Below, piece after piece: positions 10,791-54,085 of a stretch of DNA of 64,000 bases (its first letter is position 1; each line of letters starts with the position of its first letter). The stretch is from Adineta vaga. Its lineage: Eukaryota; Animalia; Rotifera. Under the pieces are notes generated by a model. It ran no database searches. It was not told the DNA's origin and saw nothing but the letters and a program-made list of their open reading frames with translations. The stretch lies in contig CP075493.1 of NCBI GenBank assembly GCA_021613535.1, positions 5,022,001 to 5,086,000 of the forward strand. The letters are read 5' to 3'. Made by a program: the position numbers and the translations under genes.

Positions 10791-10828
10791 ATAGATGGCG
10801 CTGTGCGGCTGGCATAGTGTCCATCTAT
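10791..10828. promoter_or_regulatory. GC-rich imperfect palindrome in a divergent promoter, containing TAGATGGCGCT
   Basis: ATAGATGG-CGCTGTGC-ggctg-GCATAGTG-t-CCATCTAT forms a 16-bp stem with 2 G-T pairs and one bulge. Confidence 0.5.
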
Positions 10829-39500: not shown

Positions 39501-41203
39501 TAACTACTCATTTCTAAATAAAAAGTATGTCACTATTTGTCTTGCATTATCTAATGAGAAGAAGAAGAAGATTAGACTTGCAATGACATTGATTTTTCTT
39601 TCTCGAAATGATTAACATAGTCGTGTGACAATGACTGATACATTCTTTTTCTCTTACTAATTCTTTGAGAAATGTCAAATGTAGGTGTTCACCTTCTTTT
39701 AATATCCATCGAAGGCTAAGCTTTTATTTAACTAATGTCTCAACTGTTTGCTTCTCTCCCTCTCTCTTTTTCTTTCTCTTTTTTGTTTTCATGAATTTTA
39801 CCTGCTGATCGATTACGATCATAGAGATAATCAAGACTTTTGGAACGGATTATCACATTACGAAATAATGAGAAAATTCTTGGATGATTTCGATCAGACT
39901 TCCGTGAACGTTCATTGCTCATTGTTATGCTTTATATTTTCTTTCTTTTTGTTGTTAAGAAAGAAAAATAATGCCTACACTACTTATGTATGTTGCTTTG
40001 TGCACAAATGAATAGAAGACTCCTGGTTACGCTGCGAGAACTTAAGTAGTCTTGTGATTCGACACGAAAGTGAAAAGACGAGGGAGTGAAAGAAAAGAAA
40101 AATGTGACAAACAGGAGTTTGCATACAAATACACTTATGAGATGAGGTTTCTTGTTTTACTTTTCGTTTGTCGTTTCTTTCTCTCTCTCTCTCTCTCTCT
40201 CTCTTTCTTATAAATGTCTTTACTAACCAATTAATGGGATATTTGTTATTTGAGTAGATGAATAGACATTGTGATTTGTTGATGGAATTGTTCCATTCGA
40301 TTGATCGTTCGTAACAAATAAAACATAATTGTCAACTAGTGGATCCTGTTTTGTTTTTGAAAATAAGAAACTTTTATCGAAATATCTTTGTATAAACATA
40401 CTCGAAGATGAAATGCATCAATACATTTTCTAATCAAATCATGTACTGTTTCTTCAGGTCGAATTCCGATTACTTTACGCTAGAAGAAAAAGAAAGAAAA
40501 CGAATGATGAAAATCTTGATTTGCTTCTTTTTGCTCTCAAATTACAATTAGAAATGAAGGCGTATTATTATTTTGATCTAAATCCGAATTTTGATCAATA
40601 ACAATTCGAACATGTTCAATATTTGAATTATTCAATTGCCACCAGCAACGAAGTGTTCTAAAACGAGAAAGAAAAAGTAAATTGATATGAATAGATTAAT
40701 GAAACTTACGATTCGATATGTTCTTTCCAAATATCTCGTATAGATTTTGTTTCGAATTCGATTATAAAATTATCAGCTACTGGCCAACCAAGAATTAATG
40801 ATCGAAGAGAATCATAATAATCCAATGATGTTATTTCCGATGCAATAGAATCAGTGAAGTGAGTAGAAAACCATACACGATTTAAATCAATACGTTGTTT
40901 GATTTTATATAAAATATGTCGATGATTATATTTGCCAATAATTAATTCATTCTTCGTTGTTAATATCATTAAACGTCGACATGTTGTATAATCACGAAAG
41001 AGTGTAACATGTGCCCAAAGATCATAGGAATCGAATATACCAACTGAGATTAAACATCGATAGATATCATTGGTATTTTGTAAAGGACTATCAATACTTG
41101 AACGTTTATTTCCAAGAAAATAACGACTAATTGAACGAGATTTGCGAGTTGACGGTTGAGAGACAACAACCTTTTTTAAAAGTTCATCACTTTGATTATT
41201 CAT
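36549..41203 (-). CDS. ARHGAP20: Rho GTPase-activating protein with PH, RA and RhoGAP domains, ARHGAP20-like
   Basis: SLILGWPVADNFIIEF, PLIGHEHPYSIKMKHL, GPDTTGIFRKVANAR (Arg finger), NGMNPFNLGLCV. Confidence 0.82.
40180..40204. repeat. (CT)n microsatellite in intron
   Basis: About 12 CT units. Confidence 0.8.
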
Positions 41204-42775
41204 GATAAAGAATATATAGGTATTGAATTAAAAATAGAAACATCTAAATAAAAAGAAAAATGAATTAATTAAATTAAAATCTAATTCAATTCATCTGTCT
41301 TTTTTTTTGTCTCCTCCCTCTTTTCACCATGACCATTGTCTCATGATATAAACCAACCATTAAAGATATCACTATAGGGGTCTCACTTTTACCTTTTCTC
41401 TTCTCATTAGAATAGAAAAGTGAACTCGAAAATGACAAAAATGAACATGATAGATGTCGATTCTAAAATGACTTACTCGTACGTCGTAAGAAATATCTAT
41501 TTACGTTCATATATTCAAGTGTATAGTTTCTTTATATATAAAAATCGAACTTGTATAGTTAACCAACTGTAATCAATCATAATAGTACTTGAAAATTATA
41601 TATTAAACGCCTATTGTAACTTGTTTAAATAGTCTGTATGAGAAAAAGAAGAACTTCAATAAATCATATGAATAAGTACCGAGACATATTGAATATCCAA
41701 GGATGCAGAAATAATAGGAAATAGAAAAATATCTCTACCCTCAGAACTTACTATTCATACTGTTATGTAAGAGAAAATTTGAATCAACTTTGTCTGAATT
41801 TATAATGTTTTGGTTGATTCTTTATAGAGAAAAAAAACTCTGTCTGATTATATTGTTAACTATAACATCAATTTACCTTATATTTTGCTAAATGAAGGAC
41901 ATATTTCAAGGTCTTGATTGATATCAATGATCACGAAAGAAATCGATTATAATTACCTTGATATACAGAAAATTAAGGATACAGGCTTATGCTTGATTTC
42001 TCAATTTGATGCAAAAGCACAAAACGTTTTTCTCTGTATCTCTCTCCTCTCTCGTGAAGAAAAAACAATAGTCAAAATTCTAATAAGGTCTTCTATACAC
42101 TGGCAACGATTAGATTGAAAAGAAGGGCAAAAAGATTTATTCTTCATAACGTACGACGTTACACTCATTTGAACAAAAAAAAAAAGGAGAAAGAAAATGT
42201 GAAACGAAAGTCATCGTCAATTATGTCAACATATACATTTAAATGAAAGAAGAGATGGCAGAGAGAGCAGCTCATTGTTGATCAATGAATATAAAAAGTG
42301 ATCGATCATCCAATGTGTGTGTGTGTGTCTGTGTACATATTAAACAACCTGAGGCAATCTTTGAAGTTCTCTCATTTTTTTTTCTCATGCACTTTTCTAT
42401 GTCATCAGACAATGAAGAAAACTGATTCGTGACAATTAAAATAATATGTATGTATCTATCTCATCGATCGTTCAATGATAATTTTCGATTCAATATACAA
42501 TTAAACAAATGATAGGATCGAAATATTGAAAATATCTTTAATTGAATTTCTTTACTGTTTTGATATTTGAGAATATATTTCGAAAAATACGTAATCATCT
42601 CATTAGAATTATATCCTTTTATTAATTTCGTTTCGAGTTACTTTGTACGTTGTCTTTTCTTTTCTTTTTTGTTCTGAATAGAAATCAAATAATACAATTT
42701 GTACACAACAGAGAAAGAGAGAGAAAAAAGTAAGAGAATGAAAAACATTGAAGTATTGTCAATTGATTTTAGTTT

Positions 42776-44535
42776 TTAAACAATAAGTTCTTTCTGATAG
42801 ATTTCAAAGATCATTTGTAAACGAAATTGTGGCATTTGTGCTTGAGTAAAATCTAATGGCCATTCTCTAGCGAGATATTTTCCAAATTGACATGCAAATA
42901 CACCGCAATCACTACCATTCGCTTGTTCAGGTATCATATTCATTGGTTGTACACGCCAACCATCAGGCATAGGACTGATTTGTCGTTTTGTTGCATACAT
43001 ATGTTCAACAAATGCATAAACACGACCAAGACACATATCATCTGTTCCACCTAATGAATCATAATATCCAATACAACGAGAACGAAAATCAATTGTCTAA
43101 ATAGAAGAAGAAAAAAACAACAAGTAAACCAACAAGATATTGATTTGTTCAACATTTCTTTTATTTACAGTTAATGTCCAATGATTTGCTTGATGAATAG
43201 GAATAAGAATAAGATCATAATCAAAAAATGTGATATTTCCTCGTCTCATCCATCGATCCCAGCTTGTATGTGTTGGTCCATCTTTCGATAGTTTCGAATA
43301 GAAAAATGTACTAAATGCATATACACGTAAATTGCTTTGTGTACCACTTTCTCGTGCAACTAGTGCCAAATAAAAATTCACAACCTATTTTTCAAAGATT
43401 TAACTTTATATTTACAGAGAAAAAGTTCATTAATATTTACTTCATCGTTGAGCCATGTAAGACCACGAAGTGTACGAATATCTTTCCGAGTTATAGGTTG
43501 ATCACCAATGGTTCCAAAAGATTCGTTTTCGTCACCAGTTAAAAGCATTTGTACAAGACGAAGTTGATCATCAGACAAAGCTAAAATTAACTGATTATGA
43601 AAGATTTTTTTAAATTTCATTGACATTTTACTGTATATTCGACGTGTACGCCAAGCAGATTTTGTTGAAATAGTCGAAGGAACTGTTGATGATGGAGTTA
43701 ATTGTAAAGATGATAAACGTGATGTAATTGTCTTTGAAAAGAAAGAAAAAAGAGATATGTTGAATTGACAGGATGTTTTCGATTTACATCAGGTGTAGTA
43801 GATGAAGATGGACTGGATCGTCTTAAATGTAAGTTGAAAATAGAAATCAAATGAAGAAAAAGCGTACTTTTTAAGCAATGCAGTGCGTACAGATGGAAAA
43901 TGTTGAAGTAAATCATCAAGTCTATTCATAGAACAGATCGATCATGAAAAGGCGGTTATATGGAAATAAAAGCATACGTTTGGAATTTGATTGGTTTGGC
44001 TTTGAGATATCCAACGATCGAAACTAAAATATGATTATAGTTTTAATATCAAGTACAATAATTAATCAAACGAGATGATTTCTTGCTTACCTTCAGATCC
44101 ATCATCATTGCCATTTTCATTTAGACTGTTATTGTTATTTTGATTCATTAGATTATTTTCCGGCTTACTAAGTAATTAATCGAAAGAATATGTCGATGAG
44201 ATTGATTTCTTTTCATGAAATTTCTTACTTCGATACTTTTTCTAACATCTGATTCACCGCTAAAATAAAAAAGAATTCATGTTTATATTGGTTCTATATA
44301 ATATGCATACTATCAAGTCGTTTTTGTTGTTTTTCAATAATCTGTTCTTGTAATATTGTTGGTCGATATGGTCGATTGATCTACTCAATAAATCACAACT
44401 TACTAACTCTTAAATTCCTTATTGGACTAGATTTTCTTGTCTTACTTTATGTTGAGACAATGATTTACTCGTCGTAATACTTGTTGTATCACGTACTTGA
44501 GGATGTGTTCGTCGACGAGCAGCTCTATGTTTCAT
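42776..44535 (-). CDS. SUMO-specific protease, Ulp1/C48 family (SENP1/2-like)
   Basis: WLNDEV, FSTFFY, LIPIHQANHWTL (His), YYDSLG (Asp), QANGSDCGVF (Gln/Cys). Confidence 0.92.
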
Positions 44536-44691
44536 ATCTACAAATCAACGGGAAATGAAACGACTGATTTCATATGTGAAAAAATAACATAGAAAAATCA
44601 TTTCGGTTTTCTTCTTTTTGTATGAAAATGGAAACATTCACTGCATATAACAAAAAAATAACACCTAAGAAACAAAGAGAGAGAAACCAGG

Positions 44692-46064
44692 TTATCGTCG
44701 TTTGCGTCCGAGATCCTGAGTTATATCATCGAATTTGGGATCGTTAACATTGATCATTAAAGCTTGAGCATCAAGAAATGCACGGTTTGTACTTTGAGAA
44801 AGCTATTAAGAAAAAGAATGAAATGAAAGAAATTTACAACAAATGCCATAGGAATTCATACTGTTTTAGCAATATTCTGTGCTGCACGGATTCTTCGTAG
44901 TTTTAGATAACCAGGGTTTTTACTAATGGCATTACCGATCTAAATAAATAATTCGAAGTATTTCTTTTTCATGATTAGAAAGTATATTTACAAGTTTAGC
45001 TGATTCAGCATCACCCTCAGCGAGAACAATTTTTTGTTGTCGTTCTTGTTTTGCTTGTTCAACAGTAAAGACGGCTCTTTGAGCTTCTTGTTGAGCGACT
45101 TGTTTAGATTCAACAGCAGCTGAATATTGTTGACCAAAACTAAGTTCCGTAATCGATACATCATCAAGTAAAATATCGAAATCTTTTGCACGTTCAATCA
45201 AGTCCATACGAATCAAATTCGATACTTGTTGTCGTTGAGTAATTAATTGTGAGGCATTAAATTTTGCAACTACACCTTTTAATACTTCGTTACAAATCGA
45301 TGGTAATACACGTTCATCCCAATCGACACCTAATGATTGATATAATTTTGGTAATCTTGTTTGATCAGGTCGAGCTAATACTCGAAGTGCTAGAAAGATA
45401 AAGAATGTTTATTCATCTTGACTTATTCAAAAGTAAATATACCAATAGTGACCATTTGTAGATCTAAATAAATATAGAATCGAGAACATTGAAGAGTAGA
45501 AAGATTGAAGATATATACCTTTGCTGCCAGTTGGTGATTTGATAATACTTGGTCGAGCACGAATATCGTATGTTATTGGATATTGAAACCATGGTATTCT
45601 ATATAAAAATCATTCTCAAACATTCTGCGTACGTTTCTTATATTGAATAGACATATGATATACAGAGTGTGAACTAATTTCAATGAAATTAGAAAAAAGA
45701 AATAATTGTTTTCATGACCTTCATTTTTGTTCGATTTCAGCTCTTAACATTTGTTAGAAAAACAACCAATCTGATTCTTTACCTAAAGTGTAGACCTTCT
45801 GAATAAATTGTATTCTGATCAATACCACCAACGCGATTGAAAATAATCGCACGATGACCACCTTCGACTATACAAGTGGAAAAAAAAGGACAACTCTAAT
45901 CATTTATTTTTGATTCTATCATTTGTTTCATTACCAGTAAACATCGATCGATAGATTCCATAAGCAACTGCTGATGCACCAACAAGAACTTTGACACCTA
46001 AACCTAAACCTTTCGGTGTTCCTTGAGATAATCGACTAGCAAAATTATTCAATTTTTCTGCCAT
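44692..46064 (-). CDS. PHB2: Prohibitin-2
   Basis: [16 protein letters not shown]...[16 protein letters not shown]...[24 protein letters not shown]...[11 protein letters not shown]...[14 protein letters not shown]. Confidence 0.97.
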
Positions 46065-46178
46065 GATGTTCTTTTTCTTTTTTCCTTCGATCTAAAATCA
46101 AAGACATTCTCACATAAACGACCTAAACACGACATTTATCTATGTGCAATTATTATTTTTCTCTCGTTTTTTTTTCTA

Positions 46179-47864
46179 TCAGACAATCATAACATTTTGA
46201 AATTGATGAGAAAGTTTATCGAGTATTGTACGTTGTTGTTCAATATGTTGATCAATATTTGTTTGTAAAGTATTTAAACATGTAGTTTCACGATCAAAGT
46301 CAATTGCTTTTATCAGACGATTCGAATCATGACAATCTGTTTTCTTCATATAGACTAAACGCTGTGGTTGATGAAGAAAAAGTGTTTGAGATGATGATGA
46401 TGGCGATGATTTGGACATCAGAGATGGGTTACTTGCAAGTAATTGATTGAATAACGATGATACTTGTGTATCAATGGAAGTAAGAATCGATGAAACATCA
46501 TGTTTCATAGATGTATGACCGTTCTAAATATGATAGATTATTAAAAATGAATCAATATTTGAAAGAACATACGTTTGATAACCATAATTGTTGAAGTCGT
46601 ACAAGAGCGTTATCAAGCGTATCAATAGCTGCATTAAATTTTTGTTTTTCAGCTTCTAAACGTTGACAATCAATTTGTTTTAGTGGTTCATATTTCTCTT
46701 CATTTTCCTCTTCAACTTCTTCTTCATCTTCTTCCATTGTTGATGGTTGATCAAGTACACTTTCCTACATATGCATTTCAAATCAATTTCAATATTAAAT
46801 GTGAGCTTCAAAATTTACCATCCATTTCCAAAAAACATTTTCATGTTCATTCCAAAAGAGAAAATAATTCAATTTTTGATGTTCATTTTCAAGTTCAATC
46901 ATATACTAAATAATCATCAATAAGATTCGTTTATATTCATAATTACAAATGATTTGATTTACATGAGATAACAGATGAGGATGTTGACAAAGATGTGCTT
47001 CAAGTGATGACATATTATGACACTCATGAATCTAATCAAATCGTTTGTTTTTCTATTGAGAAAAAGTAGCAAATCAATGAAATTTACTTGATGTTGTAAA
47101 CTAGCATTTTCAATCACAAGTCCATGAAGACGTCGTAAACCAAATCGTAATTTAGAATTTAAATGCATGGCTTGTTTAACTTGTCCAATGAGATCTTTAT
47201 TATCTTGTAGAGAATGAGTCATTCGTTCAATATCATCATCTGTCTAGAAAGGAAAAGAAAAGAAAATGATACAAATGAATAAGAAGATTTAGTTTATTTT
47301 TATTGACCTGATGAAGTAAACTTGTATCATCATAATCTAATATACAATCAGAATTTAAACATGATTCCATGCATTTTTCAATCAGTTTTATATGATAGAT
47401 AAGCCAACCAAGACAAATCAGTAATTGTCGACTACCTTTTCGCATTGTACTATCCAATGATAGGAAATGTTCATAAGTATAACCACGTGTAAAAAGATCA
47501 TTTTTGATAGAAAAAACTAATTCATCTAAATACACATGATTTATCGTTCAATTTCAATTGCTATCATTGAATACTCTGAAGTACCTTTGGGTGTTTGTTC
47601 AAATTTAGTAGTTGCATGTTGTTGATTCGTTTTTGTTGGATCGAAATGTAAAATTTCATATATCAGACGCCATAATGGAATAGTCTAAACAATTGTTTGT
47701 ATCGTCAATTGACTTGTTCTCAATCGAAATCTTACCGCTTCAGTACGATTGAATTTTGCCAATCGAAGAATTTCCGGTGTAATCGATGAAAATCCATAGA
47801 AAGATAAAATTTTACAAAAACATTCAATAACTGGACGGATTTGTTGTGGAGGATTGGATGTCAT
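46179..47864 (-). CDS. TEDC1: Tubulin epsilon and delta complex protein 1 (C14orf80-like)
   Basis: ITPEILRLAKFNRTEA..PLWRL, GSRQLLICLGWL and HENVFWKWM match TEDC1 motifs. Confidence 0.8.
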
Positions 47865-48251
47865 TCTAGAGTGAGATGTACAGAATTAATTTCCAAATAA
47901 AATTACAAAATAGAAAAGAAAAGATAATATTCCAAAAATCTTTGTCGTTTATTAATATATTTATATGTGTGTATATTTGGTAAGTGAAGAAGACGAATAA
48001 GAAAAGAAGAAGACAAAAAAAAGAAAGAATAGGAGTTTTGTTTTCGTTTTATACATATATATATTTATATATATCTTGTTCTATTATTCACGTAGAAAAA
48101 AAAAGAAACAAATAAACAAACATGGAATAAATTCATCCGACTACCTAATCTAGGTAGTATAGAAACAAGAAAATTGAAATATACAGTAAGAAGAAAAAGA
48201 GAATGTCGTTTTGAATTATTTGATCTAGTTAAAGAATGTTTGATTTTCCTC

Positions 48252-50832
48252 CTATCTTGGATTAGTCGATGTGATTGGGTTAGTATTATTAGTATTAGGA
48301 CTATTGGATGTCGTAGTCCATTGTTGTTGATGTCGAGTTAGAACAAGATTCACCGAAGGACTGTTCGTAGTTGATGGTAAATCAGTTGAAGAAGAATTCG
48401 AGGAATGATTAGTATTATTCGATGGAGATAAAGGCATGGATATAATTTTACGACTACGACGAGATGATGCACGTGTAGGAGGAAGCGTTTCTGATTTAGG
48501 AGAAGTAGCTGCTGGTTGTTGACGAGGAGACGTACGACTAGAAAATAGGAAAATGAATTGATTTTAATGGAAGAATGAAAGGTATACTTGGTATTCGAAG
48601 GTCGACCACGTTTTCCTTTAATAACTGGTGATGTTGATGGAGGAGGTTGTGGTGGATCACATGCTGAACACTGCCATGATCCATCTGGAATAGCTTCAAG
48701 ACCAACACAATATGAATGATAACCACGATCACATCGATCACAAAACATCATATTAGCCTAGAAAATGAGAAAAACATACATTTCTCTAAAAATCTTACCA
48801 AAAAAGTATCTTACTTCATCATGAGTTTTGTTACATTTTGCACAACTTTTACAATCAATACATTGCCATGGATATGTTTTAATAATTGTTAACATTTCAT
48901 TATTAGCATCAAGACAAGCTGGATGATATCGATGTTGACAACTTGTACATGTCATTAATTCTTGGTCATTTTCATCATTTGTTGCTTTACACATATGGCA
49001 AATATTTGCGTGACTATTCAGTGAAATCGGTGTTGATAATTTTGAAGGACGAATTGTCGCGACATTATTACTATTAGTACCGATTCCATTGACTAATGAA
49101 GGTGATTGTGATGTTGTAGGATTTGAAATTAATGGACGAACACTTGAAGTGCCTACATCTTCTTCATCACTTGACGCTCCCTAATGAAAATAATAAAAAA
49201 AAAGCATTTTGCAATAGATAAATTTATCTCTTTCACGTGAAAAGACTTTCATTAATATTAAACATTATAGAATTTAATAATTCTATCTTGCCGAAGTAAT
49301 GATTGTGTTAAATTATTAATTTAATCGTGACTAACCTATCCGGTCAAGTATTGCCTTCAAGAAAATTATGATGAATAAGAAGTATCCTCTGTTGTTATTC
49401 TCTGAAGCAAATTTTCAATGAATAGCATTGTTATGTACACGGTAAACACAAATATCAGTTTGTTTCTTGAGAAATTTACCTGTTGTGAAAATCGATCAGG
49501 ACGAATGAGTGAAACTGGTTTTGGATAATAATATAAAGCTGTATTTAGTGGCATATAGTTAAGTTCTTCAGGTCCATATTTTATATAAGAATCTTGATAT
49601 TGTCCTGGTACTAAAGCTAATGGATAAGAACCAATTTTAGTTAGATGAGCTGGCAAACGAAATTGTCGATTAGCTGGATAATGTATTTGCTAGAAGATTG
49701 AGACGAATTCAATAGATCGCAATGGAAAAATTTAAAGAAACAAACCATAGTTTGAAGATCAAAACATGCTTTCCGATCTTCACGTCGTTCTCGTTGCAAT
49801 TGCGTATTATAATCAACTGTTGATCGTAATAATTCTTGTCGAACTGTATTCGATAATTTCTAATCGAAATAAAAAAAACTTCAATAGATTTCAAATGTAA
49901 AACCAATAAATCAAATATACCATCGTGCGATTTTTATCTCCATTATCTAATGAATTCGAAGATTGAGTAGTCAATGTTGACGCAGATGCTGCTGCTGCAG
50001 CTGATAATTGATTACAAATAGATGCAGATAGAAGAATTGGAGTAGTACTATTATGATTCGTATTTGTATTATTGGCTGCGGCGAGTGCACGACGTTTTTG
50101 TTGCCAAACATCACTAAATTGCTAGAATTAGACAAAACGTAGACAATTGAAAACGAATGTAATATAAATAATCTTACATGATATTTATCTGGATAATCAG
50201 TTGACATTAATTGTAGAACTTCATCAAGTTTTAATGCGGTTAAACCTAAATCACATTGTGTTTCAGTAACAACATTTTGTGATTTCAAATATTCTCGTTC
50301 ATGTAAATCAACAATTCTTCGATAAATATCTAAATAGAAACATGAAGTGAAAGTTTCTTTTTTGAAATTCTATAAGAAATCAACAAACCAGGATATTTTC
50401 TTTTAAAAGATTTTAATGATAAAAAATCACAAATTTGTTCTTGTAAAACATGAAAATCTGCATGGGATTCATCAATTGGCCATTGATACATATAAATTTT
50501 ATCTGCAGATACATCTAATCTGAAAAGAAAAGAACATTTTGATATCTCGATGAAATTCATAATCATAGGACACAAAATATTTACCCTAGACTTTGATCAA
50601 TATCTGTTGTATTTCGTTTTTTTCGACTTTTCTTTGTTGGCGTATCGATTATTGTTGGAGAATCATTGATTTCATCGTTATTATCTCGTGTTAAACTTGG
50701 TGATCGGGTTCGTTTAAGTGATTTTGTTGTTGGTGAAGATTCTGTATGATTATGATTGACATGATTCAATGGATGAGGTAAAAGAACAACATCCGAAGAT
50801 GCTGAAGAAGATGATTGAAGTGAACTACTCAT
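48252..50832 (-). CDS. PHF10: PHD finger protein 10 (BAF45a/SAYP), PBAF subunit
   Basis: SAY domain [40 protein letters not shown]; tandem PHD ([22 protein letters not shown]). Confidence 0.94.
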
Positions 50833-51092
50833 CAGTCAATCTAAAAATAACAATGAAATATGAAATTTTCAATTCTTTTTCTCTCTCTCTCTCTCTTTCT
50901 ATGCCCTTCGTATTCGTATGAGGAAAAAAACGGGAGAGACTATAATCGCATCGCCATTTGTATATATCTACCTCGGTAGGAAATAAATAAACGAGAAAAA
51001 CGTGAATTTCTGAAATATAATTCAAGATTTTAGTTTTATTTAGAAAAATAATCATTGATTTTATGATTTTATCGAAAAAAACAAAGACAAAA

Positions 51093-51103
51093 TAGGGGGC
51101 GCT
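51093..51103 (+). promoter_or_regulatory. TAGGGGGCGCT motif in the PHF10/NHLRC2 divergent promoter
   Basis: Rare GC-rich 11-mer matching TAGATGGCGCT at 10792. Confidence 0.4.
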
Positions 51104-51409
51104 AGATGCAGTCTCAAGACGGATTGGAAAGTTTATCAAGTGTAAAATTTAAACAATTTTTAAATCATGTCATGTCATGATAGTTAGAATTTTTGTATAG
51201 CCTTCAAACTTATCAAACTCTCATTATCTTTGACTTGTAACAACGTGTTTGTACATCTTTGCTTTGTATTCACACTCTCAATGGTAGGATATAATTGGAT
51301 AAGAAAAAAATGCACTTAAATGCCGTTTTGTTTTTGTTACGTTGATTGATAGAGAGATTACACTATGAATTGTCGAGCATTTTTCTTTTATTCTTAATTT
51401 GATTTATAG

Positions 51410-54085
51410 ATGGAAACAACGAATTTCAATACGGATTCATTTCGTGATTTAACATTTGATCTTCTATCTGGTATTGCTGATAATCCATCAAAATTTGATG
51501 AATTTACAAATGCTTATTTGACTAAACTACATGAGCGTAAAGATGAAGATAATCTTCGTAAATATACACGTGATATTTATGACAAAATTTTAAGTAAAAC
51601 TAATCAAATCGTTTCCTTTTTCTTTCTTTGAATACAATATGATTTTGGATTTATAGCTTTACAAACTGTTCAAACAAATACGGTATTTCAATTGAAAGAT
51701 ACATTTCATGAGAAAATAGTTGTCGTTTTTTTCTGGACATTTTCAAATATTCATTCATTTCATGTGATGTCGAAACTAATTGCTATAGACAAACGTTATT
51801 CTGCTGCTGGTGTAAGTATTCAAAAGACAATCAAATTTTTTATTGAATTTTATCTTCATTTTTTTCATTTGAAAGGTTACAGTTATTGGTATTCATTCTC
51901 CGAAATATGAACATGAAAAGAACAAAGCAAATATTCGGCATGCTATTGAAGAACAATCACTTCCATTCAATGTTGTTAATGATAATACATTACAAGTATG
52001 GAAACATGTGGATTGTCAAGTTTGGCCAACTGTTCTGATTTTTGGACCTGATGCTTTACCAATATTTATATTTGAAGGTGAAAATCATGTGCAACATACT
52101 GAAACCTTCCTTCTACTTGTTCTTGCATATTATAAATCCAGTGTACGAGCATCACCAAGTCATTCGTCGATGATCAAAATGTCACCAGACGATATTGCAG
52201 CGGCTAATACAGGTAGAATTGTTCATAGAAAGATGAATGAACAAGAAGAAATACTTTACTTTATTGTACAGGCTCAAAACCAGCAAAATTTACATATCCA
52301 AGTCATTTATGTATAACATCAAATGGACAAATGTGTATTTCTTATGCTGGTTCAAATCAAGTGATCCTATGTGAAATTGATGGGAAAGTTTTAGTATGTT
52401 ATTTGTGTATGATTTCAATAAAATAAAGATATTTTTCTTATGTAATAGGAAGTAGTAGGTAATGGTCATCCAGGTATGGCTGATGGAGAGATTCAACAAG
52501 TTGAATTTGATTCACCACGTGGACTCGTTGAATATAATAGTTGTATTTATATTGCTGATACAAATAATCATGCAATTCGTGTGGTAAAATGAAATTTTAT
52601 ATGATAAAAATTCTTGATGTTTTTTTTTGCGAATTTATCTTTAGTTTGACCCTAATTCTCGTCGTGTTTTGACATTGATAGGTACGGGTCGTCTAGGAAG
52701 TGACAAAATCGGTGGATTGAAACGATCACAACAACCTATTGCTTCACCATGGGATTTATGTATTACAGAATCACCATGTAAGAAAAAATATCGATCATTA
52801 ACTATTGACCTATTTTCTAAATATGATTCTATTTGTTTTCATTTAGTCGATCATAAAACAGTATTACTTATTTCAATGGCCGGTCAACATCAAATATGGG
52901 CTTATGCATTTGAAGAAACTCAATGGTGGAATAATTTGTAAGGAAAATTTGTCATATTTTTCTCGCAAAAGAAAGAGAATTCCTTTTGGTTTATAGGACT
53001 CTACAAAAGAATGCTTGTTTAGCCATTATTGGTAGTGGTGAAGAAGGAAATCGAAATGATCCTGAACCGATGTCTGCTACTTTAGCAGCACCTCGTGGTA
53101 TTTGTAATGGTACCATGAATGGTCAGCCAGTTCTATTCATTGCTGATAGTAATAGTTCCAGTATTCGTGTCGTAACACTTCAAAATGGTAATGTTTCAAA
53201 TCTAATTGGCGGTGATGCTGATCCAACGGTATTAATATTTTTCTTTTTTGAAAAATGAATATATATTGTTTTATGTTTTCAAATCAATAGAATTTATTAG
53301 CTTTTGGTGATCTTGATGGTAGTAGTTTTAATGCGAAATTTCAATATCCAATTGGTGTTGCTTTTCATTATCCTTCTTCTAACTTGTACATTACAGATTC
53401 TTATAATAATAAAATCAAATGTGTAGATATGAAAACATTGACATGTTCAAGTTATTTTATAACAGATATTGATACGAAAAAACAACGTGGAGAATCGAAT
53501 TCAGCAAAATTCAATGAACCTCAAGGTATCATTATTTTCGATCATTTCATGTTTATTGCTGATAAGAACAATTCTCATGTCAAACGAATTGATCTTGATA
53601 AAGGAACTGTTGTTCGAGTAAGATTTCAATGTTTTCTTCTTCATTTTCAAAACAATGTTATTCTAGTGTCGATTTAATCTAAGTGAAACTTTAAATGAAG
53701 AACGTACCTTTGGTTCCAAACAAGCTTATGTATCGATTCTTTTACCGGACACATTTCAATTACGTGATAATAATACTGGAACATGGTCTATTGAAGATGA
53801 AGGTAACTTAGAAATCAACGAATCGTTATTGTCTTTCAATATTTAATTCATTTTGTAGATGGATTTAAAATATGTGATGGTGAATTAGCAAATAGTACAT
53901 CGGAACAAATACTTCTCGATTATATTCCACGTGATAAACAAGCCTCTCGATTAAAATATGAAATTGTCATTTGCGAAGGTGAAAAATGTACAATGATGAA
54001 TGGTGAAGTTGAACCGGTTAATCAAACAGATTCATTGATTGAATTCGTCATTAAAATCGATCAATCAGAAACTAATACTAATTAA
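51410..54085 (+). CDS. NHLRC2: NHLRC2-like protein (thioredoxin-like + NHL repeats + C-terminal beta domain)
   Basis: IGIHSPKYEHEK, VVND...WPTVL, YIADTNNHAIR, ASPWDL, ISMAGQHQIW, LFIADSNSSSIR, AFGDLDG...FQYPIGV, DSYNNKIK. Confidence 0.88.

Follow-up and report, generated by a model that had tools for sequence, protein, structure and literature searches.

The subject of this analysis is a cluster of four genes, found in Adineta vaga (a bdelloid rotifer), that may be transcribed as one unit and resolved by spliced-leader (SL) trans-splicing. The cluster occupies positions 42776-50832 of a 64,000-nt stretch of contig CP075493.1 (assembly GCA_021613535.1, positions 5,022,001 to 5,086,000; hereafter, the window), which is AT-rich (30.8% GC) and has short introns; searches of the genome covered 100.8 Mb in six contigs. 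Reading of the sequence and its open reading frames (ORFs) places all four genes on the minus strand, head to tail. Gene 1 (48252..50832), a multi-exon gene for a protein with tandem PHD fingers (PHF10/DPF-like), runs from ATG 50832 to the stop codon TAG at 48254-48252. Gene 2 (46179..47864) encodes TEDC1 (tubulin epsilon and delta complex protein 1) in eight exon-like pieces between ATG 47864 and TGA 46181-46179. It is followed by gene 3 (44692..46064), which encodes prohibitin-2 (PHB2; Band_7/SPFH) in seven exons from ATG 46064 to TAA 44694-44692, and by the multi-exon gene 4 (42776..44535; ATG 44535, stop TAA 42778-42776), which specifies a Ulp1/SENP-type cysteine protease (Peptidase_C48; SENP below). 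When recomputed, the stop-to-ATG gaps came to 387 nt (PHF10-TEDC1), 114 nt (TEDC1-PHB2) and 156 nt (PHB2-SENP), exactly the values given for the four co-oriented genes in the initial annotation. The distance from the TEDC1 stop to the putative PHB2 splice acceptor, put there at about 85 nt, was measured as 85 nt, and the PHB2 stop lies 152 nt from the SENP acceptor.

Gene identities were assigned by searching Pfam exon by exon. In gene 1, two PHD fingers in two exons exceeded the cut-off of 24 bits, scoring 31.5 and 33.2, and the N-terminal exons gave no Pfam match; the name PHF10 is used here on the strength of the tandem PHD fingers only, which do not by themselves separate PHF10 from DPF. 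For gene 2, the TEDC1 model (PF14970) reached 32.1 bits versus a cut-off of 27.4 in one exon, while a second exon matches the C-terminal end of the model. The TEDC1 introns were confirmed by L008, a spliced metatranscriptome contig (JGI) from a relative. Gene 3 matches Band_7 (PF01145) with 59.1 bits versus 23.6. Its exon lengths sum to 300 codons, interrupted by six introns of 52-184 nt, and its best full-length matches are 300-aa proteins of Rotaria and Didymodactylos annotated as prohibitin. The start MAEKLN is common to PHB2, the 300-aa Rotaria prohibitins and 300-aa RNA-derived ORFs. In gene 4, the last two exons match Peptidase_C48 (PF02902) with 42.6 and 51.8 bits versus 20.7, covering model positions 7-211 of 217, and the first exon, beginning MKHRAARRR, is kept in relatives. 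The four are housekeeping genes, functionally unrelated as described earlier.

Related sequences were gathered by word searches (with the last TEDC1 exon, the main PHB2 exon and a PHB2 fragment), contig look-ups and one metagenome scan. Most are genomic contigs of other bdelloids, and they fall into two types. The window type comprises 11 distinct sequences, the window included (L007, L009, L010, L018, L019, L020, L100, L101, L102 and L103), where L010 is counted together with the near-identical L011-L017 and L021, and L019 is the NCBI assembly of Rotaria sp. Silwood1. In these 11 sequences, the order PHF10-TEDC1-PHB2-SENP, or whatever part of it is available, is kept. The second type (n = 5; L022, L023, L026 and L024/L025), in which the TEDC1 C-terminus is shorter, corresponds to an ohnologous copy that A. 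vaga carries on contig 4 at 8049000-8066000 (G000; L111, L112). There, a PHF10-like gene, TEDC1 and PHB2 follow one another with the same acceptors, the TEDC1-PHB2 gap is 76 nt and TEDC1 is likewise shortened at its C-terminus. The order PHF10-TEDC1-PHB2 is also kept in the five relatives of this ohnolog, and both order and orientation are preserved in both types wherever the contig is long enough. The exons of gene 1 are conserved in L010, L018, L021, L022, L025 and L026 as well as in the ohnolog. L018 was set aside as a source of long intron-free ORFs; this long-read contig has frameshifts.

The initial annotation had noted a splice acceptor just ahead of each of the three downstream ATGs, and the three AGs were found at 47867-47866, 46093-46092 and 44539-44538, all on the minus strand like the genes. 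The TEDC1 acceptor, CTCTAG/A-ATG (the slash marks the predicted splice junction; AG 47866..47867), lies 1 nt before the ATG, and CTYTAGAATG is invariant at this start in the six aligned sequences. The PHB2 acceptor, TTTTAG/A (GATTTTAG/ATCG; AG 46092..46093), is 27 nt before its ATG, and its AGAT does not vary among the 16 sequences aligned, which include both ohnolog types. The SENP acceptor, TTGTAG/AT-ATG, belongs to a block, TTCCCGTTGATTTGTAG (44538..44554, AG 44538-44539), that ends 2 nt before the ATG; TAGA(T)TATGAAACA is invariant here in seven sequences, five of which also share CCCGTTGAT. By comparison, the sequence flanking the three downstream acceptors is poorly conserved, with a mean column identity of 48-62% in the alignments of 16, seven and six sequences. 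A fourth, conserved acceptor precedes gene 1 itself: TTATTTTTAG/ATTGACTG-ATG, with its AG at 50841..50842 on the minus strand. Within this TTTTAG/ATTGACTG-ATG sequence, L018 shares TAG/ATTGACTGATG without change, and TTTAG/ATT persists in the ohnolog. The offsets of all four acceptors, that of PHF10 included, from their ATGs are fixed in distant bdelloids as well as in both ohnolog types. Because the acceptor AGs are invariant while their flanks are poorly conserved, their conservation, as judged from these alignments, is beyond chance.

Donor sites that could pair with these acceptors in cis are largely missing. Between the TEDC1 and PHB2 genes, most lineages have no GT far enough from the AG to form an intron; in the window, the farthest GT in this gap is 40 nt from the AG, and the gap in L010 contains no GT at all. 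No conserved GT donor was found in the other intercistronic gaps among the relatives compared. Similarly, no usable GT donor was found between the gene-1 acceptor and GAAGGGCATAGAA, a conserved block that lies upstream of it. The initial annotation had named cis-splicing of these AGs to upstream exons as an outcome that would overturn a polycistronic interpretation, and this check of the sequence found no conserved donor.

The spacers between the genes vary considerably in length. Over all sequences, the stop-to-ATG gaps are 228-387 nt for PHF10-TEDC1, 20-127 nt for TEDC1-PHB2 and 90-170 nt for PHB2-SENP. The earlier description of the 387-nt first gap in the window as operon-like stands only given that most of it is PHF10 3' UTR (untranslated region): the polyadenylation (poly(A)) signal of gene 1, AATAAA, followed by the conserved CGACAAAGATTTT, lies at 47948..47953 on the minus strand, 80 nt before the TEDC1 acceptor. 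The same signal is found 65-80 nt before this acceptor in eight of nine distinct sequences, covering both ohnolog types, whereas the distance from the PHF10 stop to the TEDC1 acceptor ranges from 225 to 384 nt across lineages (a 3' UTR variation of 160 nt). The gap being mostly 3' UTR, the actual spacer is therefore nematode-like in length.

The TEDC1-PHB2 spacer is the tightest of the three. In the L010 type, the TEDC1 stop is followed by attttag/att, with the PHB2 ATG 13 nt further on, so that the stop is only 5 nt from the AG. At 8397-8431 of L010, and equally in L011-L017 and L021, the TEDC1 stop, the PHB2 acceptor and an ATTAAA fall within 20 nt, reading TAAattttag/ATTAAAatcaacgATG. Given this 20-nt packing, the 3' end of TEDC1 and the 5' end of PHB2 must overlap in this lineage. 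In the ohnolog type, the TEDC1 stop and the PHB2 acceptor are 19-51 nt apart, and an AATAAA precedes the acceptor by 14-18 nt in L022, L023 and L026 and by 48 nt in L024/L025. In the former three, the poly(A) site and the PHB2 acceptor would practically coincide. Some lineages have no room for separate promoters. In the window type, the only poly(A)-like signal between TEDC1 and PHB2 is the variant AATAAT, which forms part of the intercistronic block AATAAT-TGCACATAGA (46139..46154, minus strand), about 45 nt before the PHB2 acceptor. This block is present in the window, L101, L020, L007, L103, L009 and L018, and could represent either a variant of the poly(A) signal together with its cleavage region or a mini-promoter. 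Between PHB2 and SENP, no canonical poly(A) signal was seen, and SENP itself is followed by a canonical AATAAA about 150 nt past its stop. The PHB2 3' UTR contains a conserved TGTTATAAGCAGTGAATGATTTCAC (window 44620-44660, minus strand; also in L020, L019 and L103), which includes the short inverted repeat GTGAA...TTCAC. This block, after which comes CATA(C)AAAAAGA, an A-rich tract that is likewise conserved and precedes the SENP acceptor by 60-80 nt, may be a 3'-end or regulatory element.

Bdelloid leader trans-splicing, which the initial annotation had mentioned as reported, has been published since 2005 (Pouchkina-Stantcheva and Tunnacliffe, 2005, as cited in PMC3795323). The published rotifer spliced leader is the 23-nt GGCTTATTACAACTTACCAAGAG (PMC3795323, Table 1). 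In the A. vaga genome, this leader occurs in 42 copies at one mismatch, with T instead of G as the first base. Its 3' 17 bases joined to a GT donor are present in 44 exact copies, often as divergent pairs, corresponding to at least 44 SL RNA genes; none of these lies within the 64-kb window. The genome that carries these SL RNA genes thus has the means for leader trans-splicing. About 16 further copies of the leader have one base changed (e.g., TTAAAACTTACCAAGAG) and frequently form a divergent pair with a canonical one; examples are C1:1639465 (minus strand), paired with C1:1639627 (plus strand), C1:2169428 and C5:10914856. In the 80 loci from the metagenome scan with PHB2 exon 5, the last 14 bases of the leader (up to two mismatches) had no meaningful placement. 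Contigs of about 1 kb that resemble mRNAs, with 77-83% identity, were rejected as not bdelloid.

The two ends of the cluster differ from its interior in their promoter-type sequence. Upstream of the PHF10-like gene, an ORF begins on the plus strand at 51410; the head region is therefore divergent, as proposed earlier together with a GC-rich motif at 51093. This motif, CTAGCGCCCCCTAT, was located at 51092-51105 on the minus strand, and AGCGCCCCCTAT within it (51092..51103), which stands in the divergent intergenic region, 273 nt ahead of the PHF10-like ATG, is an exact copy of the degenerate 12-mer AGCGCCMYCTAT. In the genome, AGCGCCMYCTAT (mostly in the form AGCGCCATCTAT) has 90 copies versus 2 for the reversed control; both the ohnolog and L010 carry related copies upstream of the cluster. 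A second exact copy in the window, at 10791-10802 on the minus strand, is also in a divergent region, about 97 nt before another minus-strand ATG. The next co-oriented gene beyond the cluster (41203-36300, minus strand) encodes an ARHGAP20-like RhoGAP with RHG20_PH and RhoGAP domains and begins 1.57 kb past the SENP stop; in L010, this neighbour follows only about 460 nt after SENP. It is preceded by ATCGACATCTAT (41450..41461, minus strand), a copy of AGCGCCMYCTAT with two mismatches, 247 nt before the RhoGAP ATG at 41203; this copy likely marks a distinct promoter and the point where the unit ends. Within 42776-50832, there is no copy of AGCGCCMYCTAT at up to two mismatches. The statistics at this stringency are weak, with eight matches versus 2.8 expected. 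The 12-mer resembles the CTCF/YY1 core (GCGCCMYCT / GCCAT) and may serve generally as a promoter or insulator motif in A. vaga. Its distribution fits transcription of the four genes from one promoter and of RhoGAP from another. The block GAAGGGCATAGAA (50897..50909, minus strand), 55 nt upstream of the first acceptor, is locus-specific: it is conserved in the window, the contig 4 ohnolog, L018 and L025, and is a candidate promoter-proximal or outron element. It was rejected as a general promoter motif, with two genomic copies versus eight for the control.

The initial annotation had taken the cluster for a polycistronic transcription unit. At the level of sequence, the conserved acceptors, the SL genes, the spacers, the motif and the retention in both ohnologs give that proposal partial and indirect support. 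From them, we infer that the leader is added at these AGs and that the genes share one precursor RNA with one start. On balance, we lean slightly towards an SL-resolved operon, at least for the core TEDC1-PHB2-SENP, which is the best-supported part. Under this model, RNA polymerase II would start in the divergent region at about 50.85-51.1 kb and transcribe all four genes. The 23-nt leader would then be joined at the unpaired acceptors (AG at 50842, 47867, 46093 and 44539), yielding mRNAs whose 5' UTRs consist of the leader plus 1 to 27 nt and are free of upstream ATGs. Each upstream mRNA would be cleaved and polyadenylated a short way before the next acceptor (at about 45-60 nt in the case of PHF10, closer still for TEDC1 and PHB2), and the unit would end past SENP at the canonical AATAAA, leaving RhoGAP, 1.57 kb on, with its own promoter. 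Since PHF10-TEDC1-PHB2 persists in both ohnologs with the same acceptors, the cluster would be older than the group's ancient genome duplication. Whether bdelloids have true SL-resolved operons, of which this cluster is one, appears to us an evenly balanced question.

Several observations weigh against this model. The two spliced RNA contigs available from relatives, L008 and L104, were uninformative and contain no leader, poly(A) tail or second gene. L008, which covers TEDC1, stops at the TEDC1 stop codon. L104 (JGI), a PHB2 mRNA, starts 30 nt before the ATG in A-rich sequence without the leader; beyond the PHB2 stop it extends for 223 nt, in which neither poly(A) nor a recognisable SENP start appears. 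In the ohnolog, a GH99/MANEA-like gene stands about 415 nt after PHB2, in place of SENP. Moreover, the microsynteny of L010 extends to the clearly non-operonic flanks (RhoGAP and the divergent gene), and kept gene order alone is no proof of an operon because these non-operonic neighbours are syntenic too. Finally, prohibitin-2 is abundantly expressed, TEDC1 and PHF10 are expressed at a low level, and an internal promoter would fit this better than strict co-transcription; AATAAT-TGCACATAGA could be a small PHB2 promoter rather than a 3'-end signal. An alternative model is that of four separately transcribed genes, tightly packed in a compact genome, with small promoters in the 3' UTR or last exon of the upstream neighbour and short outrons that accept the leader without any operon. 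Leader trans-splicing is indeed not confined to operons, as nematode SL1 illustrates, and both the expected difference in expression between PHB2 and TEDC1 and the synteny of the non-operonic flanking genes favour this model. In the window type, AATAAT-TGCACATAGA, about 45 nt before the PHB2 acceptor, could be TATA- or initiator-like; however, it is absent from the L010-type and ohnolog-type lineages, where a PHB2 promoter would fall within the TEDC1 coding sequence (stop to AG, 5 nt in L010 and 19-51 nt in the ohnolog type). Only 65-80 nt separate the PHF10 poly(A) signal from the TEDC1 acceptor, and the promoter-type motif shared by the head and RhoGAP is absent within the cluster. Separate transcription seems to us possible but doubtful.

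A narrower unit, TEDC1-PHB2 with or without SENP, is improbable in our estimation. Here, the PHF10-like gene would be transcribed separately, and TEDC1 would have a promoter in the 387-nt region downstream of PHF10. The PHF10-TEDC1 gap is the largest in all lineages (228-387 nt), PHF10 has a conserved canonical AATAAA, and the tightest spacing, variable down to zero, is that between TEDC1 and PHB2. Against such a division, the 387 nt are mostly PHF10 3' UTR, the interval from AATAAA to the acceptor is constant at 65-80 nt in both ohnolog types and nematode-like, the TEDC1 acceptor is invariant at 1 nt before the ATG, and the gap contains no copy of the head motif. We regard it as highly improbable that the AGs are ordinary cis-splice acceptors, spliced either to upstream exons that are non-coding or, in read-through chimeras, to the upstream gene. 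GTs do occur in the PHB2-SENP and PHF10-TEDC1 gaps, such as AG/GTGTTA near 44664, which precedes the SENP acceptor by 126 nt, but none of those donors is conserved among relatives. In the TEDC1-PHB2 gap, no GT of the window is more than 40 nt away from the AG and L010 lacks GTs altogether, while the introns of PHB2 itself measure 52-184 nt. In addition, annotated and RNA-derived PHB2 proteins share the MAEKLN start; therefore, the PHB2 AG is not the acceptor of an upstream coding exon.

Established SL operons are known from nematodes, tunicates, flatworms and chaetognaths. The A. vaga cluster resembles the SL2-type operons of Caenorhabditis elegans in its co-oriented, unrelated genes, its U-rich intercistronic stretch, a first gene with an acceptor and outron, and, for PHF10-TEDC1, a poly(A) signal within about 100 nt of the next acceptor (65-80 nt here). 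TEDC1-PHB2 has the variant AATAAT instead, and PHB2-SENP has no canonical signal. Unlike C. elegans, rotifers have no known SL2-like leader: A. vaga has one dominant leader and a few single-base variants. Furthermore, co-transcription of the cluster is predicted from sequence, and A. vaga belongs to another phylum, in which trans-splicing is thought to have arisen independently. In having a single leader and an upstream end that nearly abuts the next acceptor, it resembles, in some lineages, the operons of tunicates (Ciona, Oikopleura) and the SL1-type operons of C. elegans, which lack an intercistronic region. Such abutment is seen where the stop is 5 nt from the AG in L010 and where AATAAA precedes the acceptor by 14-18 nt in L022, L023 and L026; the window itself differs, with 85 and 152 nt from stop to acceptor. 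In the chaetognath Paraspadella gotoi, a gnathiferan relative of rotifers, the operons, which have RNA-seq and Iso-Seq support, were called from leader evidence in genes on the same strand with less than 250 bp between them (PMC12460157). They likewise contain housekeeping genes and have no operon-specific leader (PMC12460157). In contrast to those operons, the cluster described here is known from DNA, and its 387-nt gap exceeds the 250-bp criterion. The same 2025 paper loosely names rotifers for "trans-splicing and operonic transcription", without data (PMC12460157). The literature searched on bdelloid and rotifer operons yielded no description, in line with the earlier remark that no systematic account for rotifers was known.

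Short of proof, this single locus is well conserved and gives exact predictions of splice positions, which makes it a test case. If the operon model is true, the cluster would represent the first documented operon system for the phylum Rotifera, and nematode-like and tunicate-like junction types would exist side by side inside one conserved unit. It would also bear on gene annotation and promoter assignment in bdelloid genomes, and would make it possible to examine whether gene order is constrained by operons once a genome has duplicated. Bdelloids would thereby add an independent lineage for asking why trans-splicing and operons evolve together.

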